Shown piece by piece: positions 3,583 through 22,404 of a stretch of 64,000 nt of DNA (position 1 is the first letter of the stretch; each line of letters starts with the position of its first letter). The stretch is taken from assembly GCF_037042905.1 (NCBI RefSeq), contig NC_087249.1, forward strand, positions 30,690,001 to 30,754,000. The letters are read 5' to 3'. Source of the stretch: Lytechinus pictus. Lineage: Eukaryota. Below the pieces are notes generated by a model. That model searched no databases. It was not told the origin of the DNA and worked only from the letters and a program-made list of their open reading frames with translations. The translations under genes and the position numbers were made by a program.

Positions 3583-6500
3583 AATTTCGCCGATATCAGT
3601 CACAATATGCCGTGTATCATTCATTCAACTAATATGAGCTAGCTAACAGGAATACACAAGAGATTAAACACAAAAGCTGCATTCGTGTCCCCATTCTTCT
3701 CTTTTTCCCTTATATCGAGCATGTTTTATGTTTGTTCAATACTCCCACGATAATTTATCGCAGAGTACTTCCTTTTTAATCTCAAGTTTTTATTTTTGCA
3801 AAGAGAAGCTAAAAAGAGATCTTTAAATAGATCTATGTATGTAATCGAAACTGCAATGTTGTATTCTAATATACTGATTAGCCTAGCACCTGCAGGATCG
3901 TTGGATAGATTTCCATGGCAGCATATAGGCAGGAATCGTTTTCCTATAGGGGGGGGGGTTAAATTACTTAGAATGTTGAAGCATAATAATACGAGCGAGT
4001 GAGCAATGCGGTCGAGCTGATTGCCAAAGTGTGGTTTTGATAATTGAAATGAATGGGTCTGTTTGCACAATATGGGTAACACTTAATGGAAATTTTCGAC
4101 GGAAAGGTAAGTTTGCGAATTTTAAGGGGGGGGGGGCAAAATAATAATTAAAAATCAACATAGCATCAGGCCGACTAGATTATTTTAGATCCTTGTGTTT
4201 TGACAGACGCGGATCACAGGGAGCGGGGTACAATGTATACATAAATCATTCCAAATATTTCCCAGTGGTATGAACTGAGGGAGAGGGGCTGACAGAAAAA
4301 AAATGAGGGGTAACCTTTTCTGGTTTGCATATTTTAGGAGAGAGAGGACAAAGGTTACTGTTGGATGTGATATTAATTTTTTGTCAGTAATTTATATTTA
4401 TAGACACACCCCCTCCTTGACAACATGCATTCGCACTAGTGTCCATGTAAATACAATTTGGTAAAGACTGGAATCGTAATATATTTTTTATGGAAAAAAT
4501 AACATTATATACATTTGATGAAGTGTAAGCAATACAATATAATCTTCGTGTGATATTTTGAAGGTAAGGCACGCATTTATTACGAGTGACTGTTTGTGCC
4601 GAAACGACAATGACGGAAAGTTTATACAGTAGGCCTACATAAATCAGCAAAATAAATATCGTTACTTCTACTGTAATAATATCATAAACATGATAAATAT
4701 AGATGGATTAGGAATGGAATCCAGAATCAAGACATGACAGAAGTGTCTAACAATAATTTTGATTTTTTTCGTCTCTGAGACCCCCCCCCCCATAAGTTTG
4801 TCACTCAAAATGTGTGTCAATTTCTCAAGAATGCAAGGGAAAATGGGTTCGATTGTTAAGGGATTATTTTTTTATAAAAATGTTTTAGAAAACTATAACA
4901 CGGTTAAAGGGGCACTTTAAAAGGGTAGAGAAGCGAGCCAAATTTGGGCTATAAAGGGAGGGGCACAAGCCTTTGCTTATGACATGTATTCAAATTCCAA
5001 ATATTCTATTTTTGCAGGTCTTTTAAGGTATATATAGAGATACGACATAATGCACTGAACTATATTGCAGGCAACAAAGATGGGAGTAATTGAGAAATAA
5101 TAATTTAATTTTGTAGTCTACCAATAACTTTAATTATCTGATGGGCGAGGGGAATATAAAACCAAGGTGGTAATAGTAAATGAACCAATATTGTAAATAA
5201 TGGATAAAGGCATATTGGCAATTACGTAATAATTAATGGAAATGACTGTTTGCTTTTGTGTTTAGATTTAACGTCTTCGCTGAAATGGGGAATTTTTAAA
5301 AACAGTAAAACGTTGGCATTCATACAGTAATGTTTTATAAAATCAGTCAAAAGGGGGGTGAATATGGTAAAGATTTTTGCATTATTCTGGTTGAAAAATA
5401 AGAATGATGAAGAGCTATTAAGTTGCCATTCTGTAATACTCAAATTAGCAATCATATGCATCCATTTTTTATCGACAATAAATGTAAGAAAATCGTCTTT
5501 TCTTGGTTATTGATAAAGATTCAGCGCATAATGGCAGATCCAAGGGGAATGATATCTAAGGAAAGAACAAAGCGCCCCCTCCTGGATTTAATTTCTCTTC
5601 TCAACCAATATTTAAATGCATTTTTCTTTCAACCTTTACGAAAAATACATAAGCTCGATGCAAAATCCATTAATCTCAATAAAAAGTTCGATCCCCATTT
5701 TCGGCCCAGAAACTCGCGACTCTTGCGAAATTTACGTAATTAGCATAATTAGCATAATTCACCATTTTAGAAACTTAAAGGAATCATTGATTATACGGTA
5801 CCCTTTGTGGGTTCTTTTTAGTGCTCAGTTACCTGAGTACAGACTATTTGACAAATAAATTTTCGTCACACTGATCGGGAAATGTTTTTTTTTACCCAAA
5901 AGTACCCAAAATATTCAGCCATCGCCACAATATGGCAAAAATAGCCCCTAAGAATAAAAATGTATTCCTTTCCTGGATCAAGTAAATACATGCATGTAGA
6001 TTTGTAAATGAATTATGACAGCATAATTAAAAAAAATCATGGCATAGATAAGAAAAATTTTAAGAGGAGGCTGCTGATTAGCTAAAAGTCTGATTATCAA
6101 AACATTCTCATTTTCTGCCATTTGGTGCAAGCCTTATTTTTAACCCCTGACAAAAAATGTTCGTGTTCGCTCAAGCACAAACGACACTTGTTGTTCTAAA
6201 AGCATTTAAAGATAAGATTTAAGAGCATCTATTAACATAAAAAATAGACATCATAATTTCAAACAAAATTTTGATAGACTTTTCTGTCTGTCCTGTTTTT
6301 ATTGATACGCACTGTATAATGGAATTAATGAATAATAATTTCTCTATAGATAGAATTCTTAGTCAGATACCATGTATTATTCATCTTATTTCTATCTCAC
6401 TTCCTCTTTCTTTGTTCATTTCTTGTTTTTGTCTGTCTGTTTCTCTCACTCTGTCATGTCTCTGTCTTCTTCCTTACCTTCAAATTCCTCTTTCTTTTCC

Positions 6501-7578: not shown

Positions 7579-10500
7579 TCACTGCTTTGGTGGAAAATGG
7601 TCTCCGGGTTTCTGTCGAAAGAAAATGAGAAAATGATAGAAAAGAAAGTTATAAAAAAAATTGAAAATTGAGAATTTTATTCTTTAGAGATAATATTCAT
7701 TGATGATTTTTTTTCCGAATGGAGTGTTATCAATTTCTTAGAGCTGAAATAATTTTGAAAAATCCCAAATTGATTGCTAAAAATCTTTTCATCTACTTTA
7801 TCAAAAATATCATGGATCATTCATCTGCATAAAAGTTCGAATGACAGATTAAATAATGTAACCAGGTGATTAAGGTAAAATAAAAAGTAATGAAGCTACA
7901 TAGACTTCACAATTATTGTTTTTTTTTATCAGATTAGTAAAAAAAAACATCTATTCAAGGTGAATATGAAATGAAATTGCAATTTGTTCAACATTTTGCA
8001 TATCAAATTTGACGTTCCATATTCTTCAGGACGTCAGATGTGTATTAATGTTGGGCAACGTATACTGTCCACTGTTTTGGGTAATGTATGTTGGTGCAAG
8101 ATATAAATATATATTCTCGGCAATTATTATCCAATTGAGCAAATTTATTACCCAATTATTAGTTTGTATTACCCAATTTGGACAGATTTTAACCAATAGT
8201 TATGCGGACAGTATGTTTTTCAGGGTTGGTTAAAATTTGGGCATTTTTGCCCAACTATATATATTAAGAGTGTATCAAAAAGAAAATTCCCCTCCCCACA
8301 ACTATCCTCACAATATTATGGATATATGTGGTATTTGGGGCAGTTATTGTTGTTTTCAGATGGGCTTTGGACATATATCATATACATGGATCATTGTTAG
8401 AATATATATACAGTGCGTCCCAGAAAAAACGAAACCGAGATTTAGCGATGATTTATCATAACTTAATCATAAATAAAATAGACAAATGACCTACCAATGT
8501 AAAGCTTAGAATCTCCTCTTTTATCTGGTATTACTTAGATTATTCCTCATTCACGCATGATTGAGCAAAAACAATTCGAAGAAAGGATGCCAAAAACTCA
8601 TTTGGCGGGGGTATCTGAATTTCAAAAAGAAAATCACATGACTAAAAAGTTCAATATCTTCTCTTTTCTTTGATACCTAAATCACAGAAAATGGTCAAGT
8701 AGTAAAAAAGTTACGATCCCTCGAAACAATGCTTGTATTTCCATAATTTCATTAAATAAACGTGTTTTCACCGGTTTCCCACTGAAGCTATCGCACGGTA
8801 ACAAAAGACTTAATGTATTTTAAAGACGACTCGGCGATTTAAAATTAGTCGGAGAACAATGCCAGGTCATGAAGGTATTTGTAATTTGGAATGGCGCGGT
8901 TGACGAGGTGATACGTCACAATGGAGCGCCAGCCTGTTTGGTTTATGCGCACAATGATAATAATTTGTACTGGGCGCAAGGAGCGCGCATGTTTTGGCGC
9001 GCGCGCCTAGGTGTGAAGGCGCGAAAAATCCTTCATTTTAGTCTTGGCTTTCAACGGAGATGAACGTCCAAAATATTCGCTTGTAATTTTTCTTACGACC
9101 TTGCATTTTTGAAGACGTCGTAATCTACAAAGAACAACGAAATCTACAAGAATTTTTTGTTGAAACCATCATCGATAGGGACTCACAACAATTTCGCTTA
9201 TGAAGCTGAAAATGCAGTCCGAATTACTTGATGATGCTCTATTTCTTGCCTGGCCTAACATTAACAATTATAACTCGTCTGCTTTGACTTTGAACCAAGT
9301 TTAATACGACGGGGAGCGACCGTATCGATTACAGCAGTCAGCAGATCGGCTGGGCCCTAACTTTGAGCTGTTTGGTTTCAGCAACGATGGGAACGAATGA
9401 TGAGAATGTGACTCAAGCTGCTAGGTGGAATTCAGTTCATTCGGCTTTTCATAAGCCTGGAATTTTTATTGAGTCTGAGAGTCTTGTCGTTAACGAGCAG
9501 GATTTGGGACTGGCAACAGCCAACCCAGCCAACAAAACATTTGAGCACGGGCCCTGGCACAAGGTTAGAGACTAGGCCTAGGCCTACATTGGCAACGAAA
9601 TCATGCATAAGTTAGACATTGTCGGCGACGCCATGATACAGTCGACTATGATTCATCATGATCACCCAATGATATGACTATGAGTATTGAATGTTTGTCG
9701 GAAGTCAGAGGTCCTACTCCTGAGGCTGAGTCCGAGCTCTCGAGTCTGCTTGTGGGAGGTGAGGCGACGGTCTGGATTGGCAGACGGAACGGGGAACGGG
9801 GTACTCGTGGTCGGTACCACTACCAGACAATTCACAAGTTCCAGTCTCTACAAGACCTAGCCTATCCGGTGAGTACGAAGCAGGAATAGATCTAGGCTAG
9901 ACTCAGTCTAGATTTAGGTCTACGGTTTAGTGTCAAATAGTATAGGCCTAGTAGGTCTAGGCCTAACGCTAAGCCTATTGATGTAGTGCTAACTTAGTCT
10001 TAGAGTTAGAGTAGAAGTTAGGCTTAAATGAATCGTAGAAGAGGCCTGCTTTGTAACGAGCAGGTAGGCCTGTCTAGGCCTGGCTTTAGATTTCGAACAA
10101 AATCATGTTCTTATTGGTCAGGAGTTAATAGGCTCTGAGTCCTTTTCATTTCAATTTCATGGCCCGTCAACCCCCCCCCCCCGTTTTCACGTTAGAACGC
10201 GAAGATCCTATTACCAACCATAGGCCAGGCATAAGACTAGTTAAGGTAGTCAGGCAAACATGGTTCGATGGGGGGGGGGGGGCTATTTGGCTTGTTAACA
10301 CAATTGGGGTTTAGATTTGAATGTAGGTCATATGTCAAGCCATAATAAGACATAGCCTAGCTTGGACTTGGCCTGGAATTAATTTTAAATTTGGTCCAAG
10401 CGGTTTATACGATCATGATGGAAAAGGGAGGGGTTATCGTCATAATTCAAACACGGGCCTAGGCCTGTTCCTACTTGACGACTTGTTTTAGTGTCTGAAC

Positions 10501-13500
10501 TAGGTCACTAGGTGTGTCATGGTGATTTTTAAAATGAGTTCAACAATTTTATTAACGTTAATTACCGTATCGTATTAGGTGTAGGCCCTAGTTCATGGCT
10601 GTGATTAATATGGATGTAAATACATTTTCACAGCCGGTGGTTTGGAAATTGGGGTTAGTCTCCTCAGTATAGGCTATGCCTACATTGAGGTTCTAAAACT
10701 TCGGCCAGAATCGATGTATATTTACGATGGAAAATCAAAGAAAAATGAAGTCTATAGAGGCCGATATGAAATTGGTTCTAGCATTACAGCTTATTCTAGG
10801 CCTAGTGATGGGCTAGGCTAAAATGTATTTAAGACCATGATTAATTTTAAGCCGCCGTTTTTGGCAAAAATGGTGAGAATAGCAGAGGGTCTACTAGTGA
10901 TTGGCAAAAAGTTCGAATTTTTTCGGTACTGATAAATAACTGAGTTAGAAATGTCACTTTGTCTTTGTTATAAATTTACAAGTAGTCTACTACTAGAACA
11001 GGTACTCGGACTACAATTTAATGGTGACACCACAGAGGAAATTAGGCTAGGTCCAACGTTAGATCTACTTACAGTAGACGCGGTTTTACATGTCTGTTTT
11101 GGGGATAAATCAGCTGGTTCAGTTAGGCCTATAAAAGTAGTATTTGACCTCTGTGACTTTTTCTGGATATTGGCCAGCATGAGCTGTGTTCTCGGTCTAA
11201 AAATTATGTGGATAGACCGGTAGTGGAAGAGCTTATACTAGATATGCATACGTCTAATCAGTTTTTAAATGAACATCTACAGACTGCGACGGGCATGATA
11301 TTATTGTTGAATCAGTCACTTGAAAAGTAGCGGATGTGGCTTAGCATTATGACATGTGATTGTATGGATTTCTTACAGTCTTTTAAAGGAAAATAACTAG
11401 AGTTTATAGTATTGAAAATAATACTATTTATTGCTGATGTTGATGATACAGTGTGATAATGATTATACATTAAATATAAACACCTCCACCTTGCAACAAG
11501 GAGTTCTGTTTATACATTTACGCCTTGAAAGGGGTTGGTTTTTTGGAATTCACTTTGCATGAATTGAATGCCGATGCTTGCTGGAAATGTGAGCTTCACG
11601 TTTCGAGGAAACATGGTACACGTAAAAGTAGACTTACCTTGCACATAATAGTCGGATGTAATTTCGAACTAGCTTGGAATCCCCAAATTAGTTTAGATTG
11701 AAGTCAAGGGGTTCAACGAGCAGTTTGTTATAATATTATAGGCCTCCTAATAAGAAACCTTTATGTAATAGGAGTCGTTTATGTGCGATGATTTTGTGTG
11801 GATTTTATTTTGTGTAAAAGAAATAGAAATGCTTAGGCCCTATTGGAATTGAATTTAATTACTGGTTGTTATATAGCGCTTTATATCAACCTCGAAGTCG
11901 AACTGCTCAAAGCGCTTCACAATTGAACCTAGTTACACCTCATGGTTCAAGGTATGTATCAAATAGGCCTATTTGGCTGGTCAATGATTTGAACTGAGAT
12001 AATATCGATAATATCATTTTAAAAAGAATGATAATTATTATAGATTTGGTATAAATGATCAAGGCGGCAAATAAAATAATAAATAATGAGGAGTTAATTC
12101 CTGGAAGGCATTGAGTGTAAATGGGCATGTGTGGGAAAGTCTGAAATCTTGTAGATGCACCATGCTGTCATTCCCCCTTTGCTTTCGGGGGACACAATAC
12201 GGATGCCTTTAATGCAATAAGCCATGTAGGTAAACTGGCCAATCAAACGAAATTTACCGATTGCACAATCAGGAACCAGGTTACAAAAGTACATCTTCTT
12301 TTTTGGAATTGTACAGCGTGTGAAATATTTTGTTGGTGGCCCGTTGAGTATGAAAATGTTTCCAATGGGCTGGATGCAATAATTTGGCTCGATTATTTCT
12401 GCAGTGATATAGAGGTAAACTGAATACTGAAATAATAATGATAATATATTTCAAAATAATAACAGTTATAGTCATTTGGAACAGATTATTTGAAGCTTAA
12501 TCTGGTTTTGAAATATTGTCTAAGTTGCGACACGCACATGTATGCAGATGATATTGCATCGCTGGTTGGGGTTGTACTGTAGGGAATTGGAAAATTAAAG
12601 TTAAAAATGAAACATAAGGAGCAGGACTACTGATTATTCCGTGAAGGCGGTTTTCAGACGTTTCGGGAAGCTGCTCCTTTCGTGTTAAGCTCATAATTGA
12701 GTGATAAATTGAAAGGGAAAGCAGAGGGACAAACCCGTTTTGGTACGAGATACAGATTTAGGTGTTCTGCCCAGGCTTTTTTCTTGTTTTCTTTTGCAGA
12801 GTCGGCTCTTTGGATAAAATGGATTCAAGCTGACTACTGCGAGGCAAGGTAGGCTGGCAGGAAAGTTTGATGACAATTGGACCTACTATAGTATGACCTA
12901 GAACGCTCCAAGTCTGGCTGCAAAGAGTTTCCCTTTGGTTGGATCTAGTTCCTGACCAGATAGCCTAGAGTCCATGGTAATGGATGTCAATTTTGGCGTT
13001 AATACGCTCTTGTAATAAATAGAAATGAACTGGGTATAGCCTGAGAACTATGCTGCCGGAAATTACCGTAATTGGAGCAGTGGTCAACGTCTTCATCTAA
13101 ATAATTTACCGACAGGTGTGGATTTATAATACGTAGTCCAAGGAATAGAGGTTTTCTTCAGTAAAAAAAACTGGTGAACAAACATCTTAGCCTTCAAGGA
13201 ACAGTATTGCAGCAGGGAAAACAATTTCATGTTTGAAACATCATGATACAGTGGGCTATCTTGAATAATGAGTCCATGATATGAGGATGAGTTCATTATG
13301 ATTTCATTTTCAGACTTTTTATTAGGTCCTCCACATTGTTCACTTGGAAGGGATTGGAACTTGAACATATGAAGAAACCCCTTTGCCTCTTTGTGCTTTT
13401 GCCAACAAGAATGTAACATATTGTTCAGGACAAATATATATATATATATATGGATGTATAAATGTATAAGGCACTTCAAATTTTATTCATTATCCTTTGA

Positions 13501-16500
13501 AGGACTACTCGTCGGATGTTATTTTATTTTTGAAATAAACAATTATTTCATGGATGTGGTGAAGATGATAAGACAAAAAGTCAGTCATGTTTTACGTCGA
13601 TATGTGAATACATAATCAAAAAATGAAACATCCCCGGTAAAATTCCAGTTTATGTTCACTGGTTCTTAGTTTAGCTGCATGAGGAGTGTAGCTCTAACGG
13701 AGTAGTCCTGATCGGGAAGGTTTCATGTTCAAATTGGTTTTAGTGCCTTCAATTATCATGGTTATACTCTATTGGTTATATGGGGTTATTCTGTGGATGT
13801 TACTCTAGTTTTCAGTTTCAGTTTTTATTTTATCTCATTTCCAACAGAACAGTATTCAAAATCCATTATAACTCAGGAATGGTATGATGTGTGTTTGTTG
13901 GCATTAAGAGTGAGGTGACTAACTAAATGCTGTGGTTGGATTTTAATTGATCGATTGTCCACAATTGAATCATATGGGTGCATGGAGTTAAGTCATGCAC
14001 TGTTATAATTATATGGCAAATGGGACAACAAGAAAGTGGCAGTACCTCAGTGCGGCATGCATTGTTGGTTTAGCTATGTTGGGATGCTAGTATGTGTTAA
14101 CTATATGGTCAAACTGATGGCTTTCGGCCATCTAATTGGTTTTAGTGCCTTCAGTTATCATGGTTATACTCCATTGGTAATATGAGGTTATTCTGTGGAT
14201 GTTACTCAAGTTTTCAGTTTCAGATTTTATCTTATCTCATTTCCAACAGAACAGTATATAAAATCCATAAAAAATACTAATAATGAAAAAATGAATAAAA
14301 TAAAATTACAACTCAGAATGGTATGATATGTACCGTATTTGTTGGAATTAAGTGTGAAGTGACTAGCTAAATGCCGTGTTTGGTTTTTATCGATCGATTG
14401 TCCACAATTGAATTATTTGTGTGCATAGGGTTAAATTATGCACTGTTATACATGTATGGCAAATGGGACAACAAGACAGAGGCAGTACCTCAGTGCGGCA
14501 TGCATTGCTAGTTTAGCAATGTTGGGATGCCAGTATTTGTTAATTATATGGTCAAGCTGAAGGCGTTCAGCCACCATTGATAACTTATCAAAATTAGTGA
14601 TGCAATGAATTTCAATTTTGAAGATTGCAATAGATTTGTATCAAAATCATGATACTTCAAATGGCATATTATCTTGTCTTCCTTCATATGTTTTGTTTAG
14701 TTTTGCGCATGGTAATCAGATTTTAATTGTGAATGAAGTTCTGACATGGTTATGTTTTAATGTATTTCTATTGGGAGATTTTTCCAACAGCTGAATACAT
14801 TGAAGTGTTTTTCATGCTCTCATTATACTTGAGATGGATATTTGTTCATATACTTGAATTGAATTTTTCTATCTGGTTTTGGAATGCAATAAGTGAAATA
14901 TTCAGGTGCAAAGTATTTGTCATTTCATGCTGGTTTAAAACGGGCTGGTATGTTGGTCAAGAATAGAAAACAGGTATACTGCATATAAAATGATCACTCT
15001 TATATCAGCCAGAATAGCTAGAGGCAAAGAATGCCAGCCTTCAGGTAACTGTGTCATGTAAGACAGCGACGTCAAGGCTGTACAAAGATTTTATACAAAG
15101 ATGATATATTTTAAATTCATTTAAAATTATTGGAGGGCTTGGAGGCCTACTTGACTACATATGCATGATAACTGATTTAGCTTGGCCAGCTGATGCAAAA
15201 CTAGACTAAATTATGAACGAAGGCTTAACAAATGAATGAAGTGTTTGGCGGCCGATCATATATATAAAATATATTCTCGTTTGGCGGTAATTTGTCAAAT
15301 TATGCCGCCTAAACACTGTTGTCATAAGATATATTGGCATGGCATATGTTCTTTAATCCACAATGGTCACTTTTGCAAGGTGTTTAAAGCAGTGAATTAT
15401 ATTTTCGCCTCTAGTTATTAGATTTTCCACTTTGATGCCATGTACGTTGATTAATATTTCATATTGAATCGGGTCCTCATTCGGTACCTAGACGAAGGGG
15501 ATTTATTTATAACTTTACATAGTACTTTAAGAACGCAATTGTAGATTTGAATGTAAGGGTGTCACGCTCGAACTTTCAGTTTAGGCCTCACCTGATCTCA
15601 TAGGCGGGGAGGCTGGTATTCTGTATACATTTATATTTTATGTAAGGGTGTCACGCTCGAACTTTCAGTTTAGGCCTCACCTGATCTCATAGGCGGGGAG
15701 GCTGGTATTCTGTATACATTTATATTTTTCGTGAAATTTAGGCCTCACCCAATTTCTCATGCGGGAAGGCTGGTATATATATATGTATATTATATGATAT
15801 AAGTATGACATCTGTAATCCACCGATTTGCCGGTAGCTCATAAATGTAGTTCATAGCTGTGCTGGTATTCCTGTCCGGCTAGCAGAGAACCAGTGGGAAA
15901 GCAGCCGCGAAATTTAACGTTGAATTTTCTGGGAGGGGGGCCTTCTAGCCGGGGGTTTAACCCCCCTTCGGGGAGCTAATTCGAGGCTATCGGTTGGTTT
16001 CAGATATACATGAATGTAAGTCTCTAATCAGAGGTATTCATATCCATGTTTTATACTTATGTGATTGTGACACCAATTTCGGGAAGCGTTCATCTCTATT
16101 GAATAAAGCCACGACATAATCGCATATTATTTTGTTTTGTCATTTTTGTTTGCCGAGAATAATGTATTTTAAAGACGACTCGGCGATTTAAAATGATTTA
16201 TTAGTCGGAGAACAATGCCAGGTCATGAAGGTATTTGTAATTTGGAATGGCGCGGTTGACGAGGTGATACGTCACAATGGAGCGCCAGCCTGTTTGGTTT
16301 ATGCGCACAATGATAATAATTTGTACTGGGCGCAAGGAGCGCGCATGTTTTGGCGCGCGCGCCTAGGTGTGAAGGCGCGAAAAATCCTTCATTTTAGTCT
16401 TGGCTTTCAACGGAGATGAACGTCCAAAATATTCGCTTGTAATTTTCCCACCTCCTCCCCAACAACCACCCATGTAAACGGTACGTTTGGGTCAAACGAT

Positions 16501-19500
16501 GTTGGAATATTGTTTAAACACATGCGTTGGAGAAGGTCGAGAATGAAGATACGCTATACGTATCATTCAGAGTTGATTTGTGTTTTATTGGAATGTACAG
16601 CTCGTTCAGAATGGAATAACGGGATGTAGAGCTGTCGATAATGGACATTTGAATTAGTTTACTTACATTAATATAATATTGATTTATATAACGAAACACG
16701 AATTCAAATCCGGAGGCAGTTTGCCTGGTCGCACACCAAAACAATACAAAGATCGTCGTGCATTTAGAAATGTGGGCCGTAAGGGAATTTTATCCTTCTG
16801 AACTATTTTGGACTGTGGTCAGGTGGGTTTTCGCCCTTACCCGTTTTTGTGGCTGGGTGTTCGTTATATATTGGTAATTCACATGAATTGTATTGTCTTA
16901 TTATTGACATGGCATATGTTCTTTAATCCACAATGGTCACTTTTGCAAAGTGTTTAAAGCAGTGAATTATATTTTCGCCTCTAGTTATTAGATTTTCCAC
17001 TTTGATGCCATGTACGTTGATTAATATTTCATATTGAATCGGGTCCTCATTCGGTACCTAGACGAAGGGGATTTATTTATAACTTTACATAGTACTTTAA
17101 GAACGCAATTGTAGATTTGAATGTAAGGGTGTCACGCTCGAACTTTCAGTTTAGGCCTCACCTGATCTCATAGGCGGGGAGGCTGGTATTCTGTATACAT
17201 TTATATTTTATGTAAGGGTGTCACGCTCGAACTTTCAGTTTAGGCCTCACCTGATCTCATAGGCGGGGAGGCTGGTATTCTGTATACATTTATATTTTTC
17301 GTGAAATTTAGGCCTCACCCAATTTCTCATGCGGGAAGGCTGGTATATATATATATGTATATTATATGATATAAGTATGACATCTGTAATCCACCGATTT
17401 GCCGGTAGCTCATAAATGTAGTTCATAGCTGTGCTGGTATTCCTGTCCGGCTAGCAGAGAACCAGTGGGAAAGCAGCCGCGAAATTTAACGTTGAATTTT
17501 CTGGGAGGGGGGCCTTCTAGCCGGGGGTTTAACCCCCCTTCGGGGAGCTAATTCGAGGCTATCGGTTGGTTTCAGATATACATGAATGTAAGTCTCTAAT
17601 CAGAGGTATTCATATCCATGTTTTATACTTATGTGATTGTGACACCAATTTCGGGAAGCGTTCATCTCTATTGAATAAAGCCACGACATAATCGCATATT
17701 ATTTTGTTTTGTCATTTTTGTTTGCCGAGAATAATGCATGGCTAAGCGTCAACAAAACGGAGTGTCGAGTGAGTTTGAACGCTATCCTGTAAAACCTCTT
17801 CATTTTATGAAATTATTGAAATTCAAGCCTTATTTCAAATAACCAGAACTTTGTTATTTCTTGACCATTTTCTGTAATTGAGGTATCAAATTAAAAAGCA
17901 GATATTGAACTTTTTAAAAATGTGGTTTTCTTTTTAAAACCCAGATACGGCCCGCCAAGTGACTTTTCGGTATTCCCTTTTCAAATTGTTTTTGCTCACT
18001 CATGCGTGAATGAGAAATAATCTAAGTAATTTCAGATGAAAGAGGAGATTCTAAGCTTAAAATGGTAGGTCATTTGTCTATTGTATTTGCGATTAAGTTA
18101 TGATAAATCATCGATAAATCTCGGTTTCGTTTTTTGTGGGACGCACTGTATAGGAGTTTGAGTAATTAACTTCAAGTTGTGTGTATTTTTTCAACAAATC
18201 GTAGGTAAGTTCATAGTTTTTACGAACCTGATTTTTTTCTCTTAGAGAGTATATAATCACTTGAAAATCAAGAATATTACTGTACGTAATCCATTTAAAC
18301 ATCATTGTGGAGTAATTCCTTATCCTTTTGTACAAAGATGAGCTTGAATAATTAAGACAAGTACGTGATCAACTTAATTTCTTACCCAGTGAGGCCAAGT
18401 TTGGATCATGTCAAAAAGAGCCTGGCCTGGGCAGGTCCTGTTTGGAGTAGCTTGGCGATGACCATAGAGAATGTAGTCAGACTTGAGTTTATTGCTATAA
18501 AATGTGATTGAGAAAGAGGGGCAGAGATGGGGTGGGAAGTAGAGGAGGGGGGGGGGGGGGTTGGGGTGGTGTCAAAGTAAGAGGTAGAATGCAATATGCG
18601 AAAATATGTAAAATACGTGAGAAAGCTATCAGTTAAAATCCTTCGTTCATTGCCTTACTGCGGACGGAGGAGGCAGGCGCAGTTGATCCCCGCTTTTTTT
18701 ATTTTTACATTTCTCAAAAATCTAGTGTGACCAAGATCCGTTCTTTTCAACTTGAAAACACATCCCCAAAAGGAGACCAACCGCCTTCTGTGTTACAGGC
18801 ATATCCCTCCACAAGCTCTTGCTTTTGAGGAATTACGCCTTCTTCTGTTTAACAAATCTTATTTATATTTCTACTCTTTTATGACAAATGATTTTATACA
18901 GATTATAATGAAAAATGATATTTTGTGAAAATAGAAGAAAATAAATGTTTATTCGAATTGAATTAAATTACATTAGGGAGGAGCCAGGATTTTCCAAAAG
19001 TGGGGTGCACATTTTCCCGAGGAAAATTTGACAAGCGAAAAAAAGCTTTTCACCCAAATTTTAAGTCATTTTGTCCACTGAAAATTTGACAAGCAAAAAA
19101 ACAAACAAACAAAAAAGGTTTTCACCCCAAATTCAAGGTCATTTCGTCCACGGAAAATTTGACGAGCAAAAAAAACGTCCTCACTTAAAAAAAAGGGGGC
19201 ACACTTGGGTTAGAACGGCATTTACATTACAAATTTTGATTATGCCTCTCAAAAGGGGGGCACGGGCCGGATGTGCCCCCCCCCCCCCACGGGATCCGCC
19301 ACTGAATTGCATATAGGTACTACTACTACTCATCTATTTGTTTTGCATATTGGAGACTCACTTTACAATGGCACAGTTAATGATTTCATCGACAGCTTCT
19401 ATTGCCTTCTGGTTCGGAAGCTTCGTTGTAAAATTACCCATGATAGATATGCCTTCAAAAGAAAGAGAAAACAGGGACGGTATATAAATCAATATGATGA

Positions 19501-19740: not shown

Positions 19741-22404
19741 GCTGCTGCTACTACTACTACTATACTACTNNNNNNNNNNNNNNNNNNNNNNNNNNNNNNN
19801 NNNNNNNNNNNNNNNNNNNNNNNNNNNNNNNNNNNNNNNNNNNNNNNNNNNNNNNNNNNNNNNNNNNNNNNNNNNNNNNNNNNNNNNNNNNNNNNNNNNN
19901 NNNNNNNNNNNNNNNNNNNNNNNNNNNNNNNNNNNNNNNNNNNNNNNNNNNNNNNNNNNNNNNNNNNNNNNNNNNNNNNNNNNTGTCTTCATAATCATTG
20001 TCATCATCACCACCATCACCACAAACAACGTCATATTCACACGATCTCCATCACCATCACCCTGTTAACAATCATCCACATCATAGACCTACCTAATGAT
20101 CTGAAGTTATACCAGGGTGCATGACTACCCACGGTGTCCCATCCTCGACCTCTGTATACCAAACCGTCTTCACCGACCAGGAAGGAATATGCGATGTCGT
20201 TCCATCCCCTGACGTCCATGTGGAAATCCTGAACGAGATCGAAATAATTCAAGAATACATCCGAGACCAACACATTAAACTTCAATTATAATACTTGTAT
20301 GTAATATGATAACAATTACATTTCATTTCAGATCAATTCGAGGTGTAAACTGAATTGTACAAATCATTTCAGAAAAAGACACGATGAACATTTTTGTAGC
20401 AATATGAATTCACATAAAATAAAAAGTGAGCCACTCTTGTAAAAGCGTGTCCTTATAATGATACATTTGGCTCAAAATGTGCAACTATGCGGACGAATTA
20501 GCCCACTTTTGCGCGAGTGACTCACTTTGTTTACACTTGATTAATGAATTTCATTCTTGTTTAAGAATGATTGTCCCTGTTGAAAGAAGGGCGGAGGGGG
20601 GGGGGAGAAGGAGCAATTTACCTGTATGGATCGCATCATCTTACAGCATTCGTCAAAGGTAAAGCATTCTGGCGTATCGGTGTGATGTAATATCACAAAG
20701 GGAACCGGAGTTTCCATGTCTGACCTATCCTTGGCAGGTCGAGCACCCCACTCTTCGCGGGTTATAACCCTTGGACACGCCTTGACTGTGAATTCTATAA
20801 TATACAAAATGGGGGCTCGTGATGAAGCCCTTTTTCAATATGGGATGAATAACGAGCTGAATGGTCAAAGAACTTATCTAGTCTGGTTTGTTGGAATTGT
20901 TTTCATTAATTTCTGGACGTCATCGCATATGGTGTAGGCCGTAACATTTTAAATGTATGTCTCACAAAATATTATCAATGATCTTAAATTAGACTGTTAT
21001 TGTTATAGCTTAAACGTGATTATTTTGGATTGAATTTTAAAGTGGGATCACATTTGACATGAAAGATAAGCTTCCCTCGTACTCATACTGTCTAATACAG
21101 TGGATGATTTCATGAAATAATCAAGTGAAACAGAATATGCCTACATAATTCATAAGAGATGGAAAACTTACCAACTGAATCCATCAATCTCCCACCGTCG
21201 ATATCTGCCTGGAGTTGTAAAATGAATAATAACAAAATGACGTAACGAAGATAAAAATTCAGACTCCAGTTTCTAATAATCAATGATCTGTACTTAATAC
21301 AAGCCTTTATAGATGTGGCTTTAGATAAACATCATTCTATTCAGCGATAGAGATTGCTATTCCCCGGGCTATGCCATGCAGGAATGGGGATTCCCCCAAA
21401 CAAGGGTAGTGCGTAATCAATAGTGGAATACAAACAAACAGTGGTGTACGTCAACACAAGGTGAAGGATATGATCACGGAGCTATATAGCTCCATGATGA
21501 TAAATGGAATGGTTTTATGCAGGCAAACTACTGTGTGTGGCTTGTGCACTGAATTCGCTGGAGCGAGGATTGACTTTCTGCACTTACATATATACATGCA
21601 CAGAGGTAATACATTTAGATAAATCAATTATACGACAGTCGTAATATTAACAATGAAACTAAATATCATCATATAAATCACAAATTAATAACATACAAAA
21701 ATTGTAGTACCTAAAAATATTGAAAAAAAAAACGGTTAACGAAATATAAATTAAAATATCACAGGATATAAAATCATCTGCGAAATAAAGACAAATTTAT
21801 GAATTATCATAAAAGCGATATAAAGAGGAGCATACATAAAAGTTGCCCCAGAGGTGTTGAGCGAACTCCTGCGTTCATAGATTAATGTTTTTGTTAAAAA
21901 AAGAGTAAAGTTTATACTCACATCCTTATTTTGTTTTAATTATGTATTATGAATATGTTGTTTATATTAGTAGGTTATTTTATATATTGCATGCGTAGAC
22001 ACATTTGATATTATGTACTGTGTTATGTTGAACGCAATAATGAAAGCAAAATAAAAAACATTGTTTCATCTGTACGTAGGGAAATTTTCATCAATTGAAG
22101 TGGTAATAAAGATGTAATATCACCTTCCTTCCGTCAAACTAGGCACTATCCTCATGTCACTTTTGGAAGGAGAGGAGAATACTAAGTACATTCATATACA
22201 ACCTGATGCCATTGAGGAATTTATGAATGTTTGTGCGAAGTATACATACCACTTCCATTATCGGACAGTTTTCATTCAAATGAAAAGCTCGATACATACC
22301 TTCCAGTGCATGTGTTTGTGATCATTCTGAATATCCTTCCTTCCATCACAGATTGCCTTGCAGACGACAAGAATAAGAACTACTGTTAAATTACACTTCC
22401 ACAT
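7579..22404 (-). CDS. PGRP: Secreted amidase-type peptidoglycan recognition protein (PGRP copy 2), 7 exons, ~224 aa
   Basis: Exons 22404-22300, 21208-21172, 20785-20622, 20228-20093, 19452-19362, 18494-18386, 7611-7579; all GT-AG and phase-consistent. Signal peptide, then CPRVITREEWGA, VILHHT, RGWNDIAYSFLVGEDGLVYRGRGW, GISIMGNF, YGHRQ, TCPG, WPHWKPG. The Zn/catalytic residues His, Tyr, His and Cys are present. Confidence 0.9.
13733..14575. repeat. Diverged ~400-bp tandem duplication inside the split-repeat element
   Basis: aattggttttagtgccttca...ttcggcca at ~13733-14130 is repeated at ~14134-14575 with substitutions and a ~35-bp AT-rich insert. Confidence 0.85.
15551..15775. repeat. 89-bp tandem repeat (two copies plus a partial third) in repeat B1; also present in B2 at ~17121-17345
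   Basis: atgtaagggtgtcacgctcgaactttcagtttaggcctcacctgatctcataggcggggaggctggtattctgtatacatttatatttt occurs twice exactly. Confidence 0.9.
18974..19304. mobile_element. hAT-type MITE in PGRP intron 5 (family also at 28444-28769, ~41958-42382, 59567-59859)
   Basis: Ends ...ggatccgccactg. 8-bp TSD aattacat/aattgcat. Shared internal gaaaatttgacaagc repeats. Confidence 0.7.
19560..20060. repeat. (CAT)n/(CTA)n microsatellite with assembly gap (N 19770-19983)
   Basis: Directly visible. The same intron is gapped in copy 3. Confidence 0.9.

Follow-up and report, generated by a model that had tools for sequence, protein, structure and literature searches.

A conserved two-hairpin core with complementary loops in the repeats of a putative non-autonomous split-direct-repeat retroelement of Lytechinus pictus

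The 64,000-nt stretch of Lytechinus pictus DNA analysed here (contig NC_087249.1, positions 30,690,001 to 30,754,000; hereafter the window, with positions counted from its first letter) contains a retroelement-like element bounded by split direct repeats. A 196-nt segment of its repeat B (15810-16005) had been proposed, in a sequence-only reading, as a compact multi-stem RNA with an 8-bp kissing loop. Comparison with a homologous lineage from marine metagenomes suggests that the conserved object is smaller, a core of about 110 nt predicted to form two hairpins with invariant complementary loops. As far as sequence comparison can tell, this core appears to be a real, conserved and undescribed sequence-structure module, with weak support for its structure. 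Tentatively, and with slightly less than even confidence, we explain it as a cis-acting signal in the 3' untranslated region (3' UTR) of a non-autonomous split-direct-repeat retroelement, probably with loop-loop pairing.

The segment, the core and the blocks conserved between the window and the homologous lineage (H) are listed below, together with the residues kept in three short predicted proteins (P0006, P0009 and P0007) that are described further on; energies are in kcal/mol and MFE stands for minimum free energy.

15810-16005, plus strand: 196-nt segment in repeat B1; stems present, MFE -76.8, z-score -3.18
17382-17577, plus strand: second copy in repeat B2, identical to 15810-16005
15861-15894, plus strand: hairpin SL-A; lower stem, internal loop, top stem CUG/CAG and loop UCCGGCUAG; local fold -10.7
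15875-15882, plus strand: loop 8-mer 1, CCGGCTAG, invariant
15932-15969, plus strand: hairpin SL-B; stem GGAGGGGGG/CCCCCCUUC and a 20-nt invariant loop; pair probability 0.98
15945-15952, plus strand: loop 8-mer 2, CTAGCCGG, complement of 15875-82, invariant
15810-15820, plus strand: block 1, ATCTGTAATCC, 11 nt identical in H; kept as GGLQ in P0006/P0009
15870-15885, plus strand: block 2, CCTGTCCGGCTAGCAG, 16 nt identical in H; kept as LLAGQ in P0006/P0009
15938-15960, plus strand: block 3, GGGCCTTCTAGCCGGGGGTTTAA, 23 nt identical in H; kept as GL(N/K)PRLEGP or GVNPRLEGP in P0006, P0009 and P0007
16102-16116, plus strand: poly(A)-signal block, AATAAAGCCACGACA, a 15-nt identity run

Homologs were searched by a gapped two-motif pattern scan of metagenome contigs and prokaryote genomes, which returned 54 metagenome loci and 36 loci in prokaryote genomes. 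The true relatives among them were L003, L025 and L029, all from marine samples, and the remaining loci were rejected as chance matches in GC-rich bacteria. Exact-protein look-ups added L091-L098. As the copies are 98-100% alike, they were counted as one lineage, H. Searches with the 73-amino-acid open reading frame (ORF) of H returned near-identical copies only, exact-word scans of viral contigs (three patterns) and of metagenomes (a 22-mer) gave no match, and a search for spurious ORFs over the core (15841-15975, minus strand) and repeat A2 (16225-16416) yielded no candidates.

Identity between the window and H is 60% over 15810-16005 and falls to 46% when the three perfect blocks are left out. 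Over 447 aligned nucleotides, only four identity runs of at least 8 nt were found (11, 16, 23 and 15 nt), and the two complementary 8-mers sit in the two longest of these. The chance that two random 8-mers would both be fully conserved is 0.024, and a count of window pairs puts the chance of finding any 8-nt Watson-Crick complement within the set of four blocks at about 0.01. It is because of this block conservation, and not because of a single-sequence fold, that the complement deserves attention: an 8-nt inverted complement was present in 18% of 5000 dinucleotide shuffles, and in 16% with both arms in loops closed by at least 3 bp. The 8-nt complement alone is thus not beyond chance.

Both hairpins can be formed in both DNA lineages. 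The top stem of SL-A (CUG/CAG) is invariant, and the MFE fold of H has CCUGU/GCAGG around the same loop; C15870 faces A15886 in the window and pairs as C-G in H. The stem of SL-B reads GGAAGAGGG/CCCUCUCC in H, where one or two G-C pairs are replaced by A-U through double changes, depending on the placement of a 1-nt gap, where G-U pairs became A-U and G-C, and where the base of the stem is shorter by one or two pairs. The G-U pairs of SL-B fall on the plus strand, and the loops (that of SL-B contains CUAGCCGG) are invariant while the stems vary. In the MFE fold of H itself both hairpins form and the SL-A loop is free; its pseudoknotted conformer reaches -51 to -58 before penalty, compared with -43.2 for the nested fold. 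A covariance model built from both lineages matched both window copies at 122 bits and found no further copies in the 64-kb window.

Two further lineages came from a search of 1.8 billion representatives with a profile that was made from both lineages and covers the core in its stop-free antisense reading. P0006 and P0009, of 79 amino acids, are two copies lying 1565 nt apart on one 10.9-kb contig, a spacing that matches the 1570-1572 nt between B1 and B2 in the window; P0007, of 31 amino acids, matched the profile as well. The clusters of P0006 and P0007 had no other members. These ORFs were rejected as genes, since in the window the frame is interrupted by stops and broken by the 14-nt insertion. 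They keep the residues encoded by the blocks, so that these two lineages are known at the amino-acid level, via back-translation, and there all determinable bases of both 8-mers are unchanged. The back-translated SL-B stem still pairs, including an A-U where the window has G-U, and the spacing of P0006 indicates that the 14-nt insertion is absent, as in H. An RVT_1 gene lies near the related copy on the P0006 contig, on the strand equivalent to the plus strand of the window, although its membership in the element is only putative. From the strand of this gene and the conserved AATAAA block, the plus strand can be taken as the sense strand.

The sequence-only reading had drawn the whole segment as nested stems. 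The stems listed in it can pair as written, the six with stated or implied positions in full (5/5, 9/9, 6/6, 5/5, 9/9 and 9/9, with seven G-U pairs), and the complement between its two loops is exact, CCGGCTAG at 15875-82 being the reverse complement of CTAGCCGG at 15945-52. Its second copy at 17382-17577 proved identical, and its description of a GC-rich island was borne out (GC 0.505 compared with 0.32-0.40 in the flanks), as was the AATAAA about 100 nt downstream, which starts at 16102, 97 nt past the segment. When the window copy was folded against shuffled controls, the plus strand gave an MFE of -76.8 kcal/mol, the shuffles gave -62.45 +/- 4.5, and none of 200 was as good (z -3.18). For the minus strand the MFE was -57.6 (z -1.75), so that the strand asymmetry is real.

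The compact fold as such is less well founded. Its stems are pairable, but the nested fold scores -58.1 against the MFE of -76.8 kcal/mol. In the nested ensemble the helices gccggtagc/gctatcggt, tagttc/gagcta and gctgt/gcagc and the CCGGCTAG hairpin have pair probabilities of at most 0.006, because CCGGC pairs with the upstream GCUGG in the window copy. The stem gaaatttaa/ttgaatttt is impossible with 9 bp around a 2-nt loop, and folds with 8 bp and a 4-nt loop. When the two 8-mers are kept unpaired, the best fold reaches -67.3 and includes the loop-1 hairpin as first drawn. A loop-loop duplex adds -13.8 to -18.5 (-18.5 when extended), which brings the kissing conformer of the window copy to about -81 to -86 before pseudoknot penalty, competitive with the MFE; the folding tools used leave pseudoknot energy uncounted.

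Comparison with H showed in addition that much of this architecture is specific to the window copy. The elements concerned are:

15829-15837, plus strand: 5' arm gccggtagc of the 9-bp outer stem; absent from H and, by spacing, from P0006
15986-15994, plus strand: 3' arm gctatcggt, inside the semi-conserved block CGAGG.TA.CGGTT
15909-15928, plus strand: AU-rich middle hairpin, pair probability 0.97 in the window copy; sequence not kept in H

The 14-nt insertion that holds the 5' arm (15829-15837) is absent from H, where either CCGC at 15820 or the SL-A loop is an alternative partner for the block of the 3' arm. Nor does H have the CAGAT arm needed for the outermost stem, and the middle stems are not kept either. 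In paralogs of the window copy, the region of the AU-rich hairpin shows a deletion at 15923 and a loose end at 15937. The compact multi-stem architecture could thus not be upheld beyond the window copy, all the more as the H segment is no more stable than its shuffles.

Four related words were noted in the window copy, namely GCCGGTAGC at 15829-15837, TCCGGCTAGC at 15874-15883 and the reverse forms CTAGCCGG at 15945-15952 and GCTATCGGT at 15986-15994, which make two nested complementary pairs. The GCCGGTAGC word lies in the lineage-specific 14-nt insertion, which resembles a partial copy of the SL-A loop.

The core is carried by a host element whose layout, A1-interior-B1-A2-spacer-B2, was deduced from the repeats in the window:

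8822-9090: repeat A1, 97.5% identical to A2
15332-16170, plus strand: repeat B1, a 0.84-kb direct repeat that holds the 196-nt segment 15810-16005
16171-16446, plus strand: repeat A2, following B1
16447-16901: unique spacer of 455 nt between A2 and B2
16902-17739, plus strand: repeat B2, 99.4-100% identical to B1

The borders vary by a few nucleotides with the delimitation, B1 being drawn also as 15332-16164, B2 as 16902-17735, A1 as about 8811-9090 and A2 as 16160-16446. The sequence TAATG is common to the B/A junction and to both element ends. This is the order A1-interior-B1-A2-B2 of the split-direct-repeat architecture that was defined for PAT/Ngaro/TOC1-type tyrosine-recombinase retroelements (PMC4157794). 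The window element shares this layout and differs in that the reverse transcriptase (RT) and tyrosine recombinase (YR) genes are absent and a 455-nt spacer separates A2 from B2. It has no ORF longer than 128 amino acids, and no Pfam domain was found in the plus-frame pieces of at least 60 amino acids that were scanned, in agreement with the loss of ORFs suggested earlier. Since these pieces contain no Pfam domain and no RT or tyrosine-recombinase genes, the window copy is considered non-autonomous. To judge from its sequence, the host would thus be a non-autonomous, ORF-less split-direct-repeat (PAT/Ngaro/TOC1-type) retroelement of the sea urchin.

The A/B layout is shared by H: L094 (1-5748) begins with A, continues with an interior of about 5.3 kb and ends at the start of B, L091 has the order interior-B-A, and L003 has spacer-B-flank. 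Within the H interior no called gene exceeds 72 amino acids and no Pfam match was obtained, and the interior of L094 is unrelated to that of the window except for an 83-nt block just before B. As the interiors of window and H are unrelated and lack ORFs, two gene-less elements share only their repeat modules. Constraint thus appears to be confined to the terminal-repeat modules, the pattern to be expected if they hold the cis signals of an element mobilised in trans.

More than one lineage is thus seen to maintain non-autonomous split-repeat elements whose cargo is interchangeable. The sole conserved part of the interior (15237-15316, upstream of B1) is 78% identical to H over 83 nt. It contains at 15279-15313 a GC-clamped hairpin, GGCGG-UAAUUU...AAAUUA-GCCGCC, the innermost pair of which is changed on both sides in H (UAAUUG/CAAUUA), a compensatory change. 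The 5' half of B consists of a tandem array at 15551-15776 (and 17121-17346) of two 89-nt units and a partial unit, and in H the minus strand of L029 has about six tandem units of 45-60 nt at about 900-1200. Each unit folds as a hairpin GGCCUC...GAGGCU with a loop of the form CGAUUUCA.AUGCGG, and in one unit of H an A.G mismatch is replaced by U-A (CCUCUCC/GGAGAGG). The whole 8.9-kb element sits centrally in an older inverted repeat with arms at 8407-8768 and 17791-18152, which are 80-93% complementary and probably belong to a foldback element or one resembling a miniature inverted-repeat transposable element (MITE). Further downstream, at 20037-20807 on the minus strand, ORF pieces resemble exons of a peptidoglycan-recognition protein (e.g. 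ITREEWGARPA...VILHHT) and adjoin an N-gap at about 19800-19990.

Reads from RNA of the source species map to the region and show that the family is transcribed. Most of these reads are only 90-95% alike, and hence it is other copies of the family that are expressed. Among the fixed paralog differences listed for 15810-16005 (15833, 15843, 15852, 15980, 15981, 15983, 16000 and 16005), none of the eight falls inside 15853-15977; with G15833 changed to A, the outer stem peculiar to the window copy has an A-U in place of a G-U. No pile-ups of read starts or ends were found in the region, at a depth of only about 10-30 reads. At 15889-16048 the minority strand makes up a relatively larger share of the reads. 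One related species (run X10) has DNA contigs in which the word depth reaches 2,600-31,000 at 15849-16008, 16169-16208 and 16729-16848, compared with 200-500 in the flanks, and over 15849-16008 it amounts to 10-100 times that of the flanks. In that species these modules must therefore be part of repeats much more numerous than the family of the window element.

The core could not be assigned to a known RNA family. Rfam cmscan of the whole window at gathering scores gave no match, and at E<=10 both the region 15300-16200 (snoRNA, CRISPR-DR and lncRNA families at 12-22 bits) and homolog L091 returned noise only. Hammerhead, hairpin, hepatitis delta virus (HDV)-like, twister, pistol, hatchet and other Rfam ribozymes were without match in the window and in H. 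Several other identities were also rejected. For a tRNA or a tRNA-derived head of a short interspersed nuclear element (SINE), ARAGORN found no match in 8000-19000; on visual inspection, GGGTTTAACCC misses a B box by one base, and there is no A box at tRNA spacing. A coding exon is not compatible with blocks that are identical at all codon positions and are separated by indels of 14, 3 and 1 nt, and a TATA-driven start at 15810 is contradicted by the lack of a conserved TATA and of a depth step.

A structural likeness exists to the dimerization and packaging kissing loops of retroviruses and long-terminal-repeat retrotransposons, of the type of the HIV-1 dimerization initiation site (DIS). In both cases hairpin loops are able to form a loop-loop helix of 6-9 bp, and like DIS-type loops, those of the core contain palindromic tetramers (CCGG and CUAG). 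However, DIS loops are self-complementary and located in the 5' leader, whereas the core would pair two different loops that lie 62 nt apart in a 3' repeat. The loop CCGGCUAG can pair with itself only through the 4-nt CCGG or CUAG, its 8-bp partner being the other loop, and the core lies in the 3' repeat B, where the segment ends 97 nt upstream of AATAAA; a DIS-type loop and a DIS-type location were both rejected on these grounds. As the two loops lie 62 nt apart in the same repeat, pairing within one molecule is possible.

Structures in the 3' UTR of retrotransposons without long terminal repeats (non-LTR), such as the R2 3' UTR and the tail stem-loops that long interspersed nuclear elements (LINEs) share with partner SINEs, are kept by non-autonomous copies that use proteins supplied in trans, and their loop sequence is conserved while the stems vary. 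The core likewise lies near the 3' end of the transcript and has conserved loops and variable stems. It differs in that its host is a split-direct-repeat element of tyrosine-recombinase type and not a target-primed one, that 100-240 nt separate it from the downstream poly(A) signal, the structures of non-LTR tails being at the very end, and that it consists of two hairpins with mutually complementary loops without a sequence or Rfam relationship to the non-LTR structures. For DIRS-1, after which this kind of tyrosine-recombinase retroelement is named, a 2020 study (PMC7192593) states that no primer for reverse transcription was determined, and cites a proposal of Poulter and Goodwin in which a 3' hairpin of the mRNA acts as self-primer; this hairpin is single and short and located at the mRNA end (positions 4792-4805). 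The core resembles it as a hairpin structure near the 3' end of a tyrosine-recombinase retroelement transcript, but it is larger, has two hairpins and is placed at a clear distance before the poly(A) site, and the 3' end showed no sign of folding back. Literature searches on PAT, Ngaro and TOC1 elements gave no description of such a conserved RNA module.

According to our tentative explanation, the signal would lie in the 3' UTR of the element transcript, about 100-240 nt upstream of AAUAAA, and would be present in both B copies. The element would have to retain it for its RNA to be recognised by the trans-acting proteins of an autonomous relative (RT, a Gag-like protein or recombinase), and such recognition might serve packaging, the pairing of two RNAs or the initiation of reverse transcription. 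Pairing of the loops with each other would most likely extend over 8-9 bp, either within one RNA as a kissing or pseudoknotted domain or between two RNAs. A more specific and far-reaching version can be formulated, in which the complementary loops are a kissing or pseudoknotted recognition or initiation signal for reverse transcription (or for RNA pairing or packaging) of split-direct-repeat YR retroelements in general, and in which non-autonomous elements with interchangeable interiors of 5-6 kb persist by keeping only the core module and the repeat junctions. This version seems doubtful to us.

Several results weigh against a cis-acting RNA signal with paired loops. The folding energy of the H segment is no better than that of shuffles (z +0.5 to +1.3), and the nested MFE of the window copy sequesters part of loop 1. 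The lower 4-bp stem of SL-A is present in both lineages in a shifted register (CUGG/CCAG versus UGGC/GUCG), and was not counted as covariation. With three distinct rows from the two DNA lineages, the covariation test found one double change, and 158 of 500 shuffles were as good. The eight loop-loop pairs never vary between lineages, so that the comparison neither proves nor refutes them, and the partner of the conserved loop 1 is ambiguous, since the 3' block G(C/T)TA(T/G)CGG is a second sequence with which it can pair. Finally, ribo-depleted RNA reads over 15729-16900 (B and A) show a bias of about 4:1 to 28:1 for the first mate on the plus strand, which under the commonest (dUTP) convention would mean antisense RNA, the library being uncalibrated. 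The earlier proposal of an undescribed cis-acting RNA with complementary loops is therefore retained in part: the 8-mers lie in the longest conserved blocks, SL-B pairs through changed bases and Rfam holds no match, but covariation is not significant.

Among the alternatives, the blocks might act as DNA, either as inverted protein sites (accessory sites of the recombinase, or of a host transcription factor at a promoter in B like that of a long terminal repeat) or as hairpins of single-stranded cDNA. We regard this as rather unlikely, while giving it real weight. Words resembling CCGG(C)TAGC are found in both orientations (15829-37, 15874-83, 15945-52 and 15986-94), like repeated protein sites, Watson-Crick complementarity holds on either strand, the strand of the RNA-seq data is uncalibrated, and DIRS-1 makes single-stranded linear cDNA (PMC7192593). 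On the other hand, the blocks have the shape of a stem with an asymmetric loop (CCTG...CAG(G) and GGG...CCC) and not of a symmetric site, SL-B shows compensatory change with G-U pairs on the plus strand, the plus strand folds 19 kcal/mol better than the minus strand in the window copy, and the module lies 200-300 nt from the B/A junction, where recombination would be expected. Somewhat less probable in our view are two independent protein-binding RNA hairpins with incidental loop complementarity. This would fit the extension of the conserved blocks (16 and 23 nt) well past the 8-mers, the invariance of the loop-loop pairs between lineages and the ability of a weak inner stem, CCUUC/GGGGG, to occupy loop 2. 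Yet a perfect 8-nt complement among few conserved blocks has a chance of about 0.01, and the energy of the duplex (-13.8 to -20.3 kcal/mol) outweighs that of the displaced alternatives in both lineages.

That the shared blocks are chance survivors and the stable fold a functionless by-product of G/C runs is very improbable. The ordinary stability of H, the frequency of 8-nt inverted repeats in shuffles and the lineage-specific nature of most stems first described would agree with it, but it is hard to see how, without selection, runs of 16 and 23 nt would stay perfect amid 46% identity and next to unrelated interiors, and how four lineages would share the same blocks. Hammerheads are found in Penelope-like elements and retrozymes, and HDV-like ribozymes in R2 and related non-LTR elements. 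The precedent of these retroelements, and a compact, pseudoknot-capable, conserved core inside a retroelement, would speak for a new self-cleaving ribozyme, which had been raised as one option together with the statement that the segment does not fit the hammerhead or hairpin consensus. In line with the latter statement, no Rfam ribozyme family appeared even at E<=10 in either lineage. Self-cleavage itself received no support: read starts and ends are not in excess at the depth of about 10-30, and cleavage at the core, which occurs in both B copies 100-240 nt before the poly(A) signal, would sever the transcript at unhelpful places. We consider a ribozyme the most remote of the explanations, and hardly credible.

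The start of reverse transcription and the choice of RNA are unsettled for tyrosine-recombinase retroelements (DIRS, PAT and Ngaro), and a short module that is kept by gene-less elements with unrelated interiors represents a concrete candidate for a cis signal. If the core were a DNA site instead, it would mark where element proteins bind. Under either reading, searches of echinoderm genomes could use it to detect non-autonomous representatives of this poorly annotated class.

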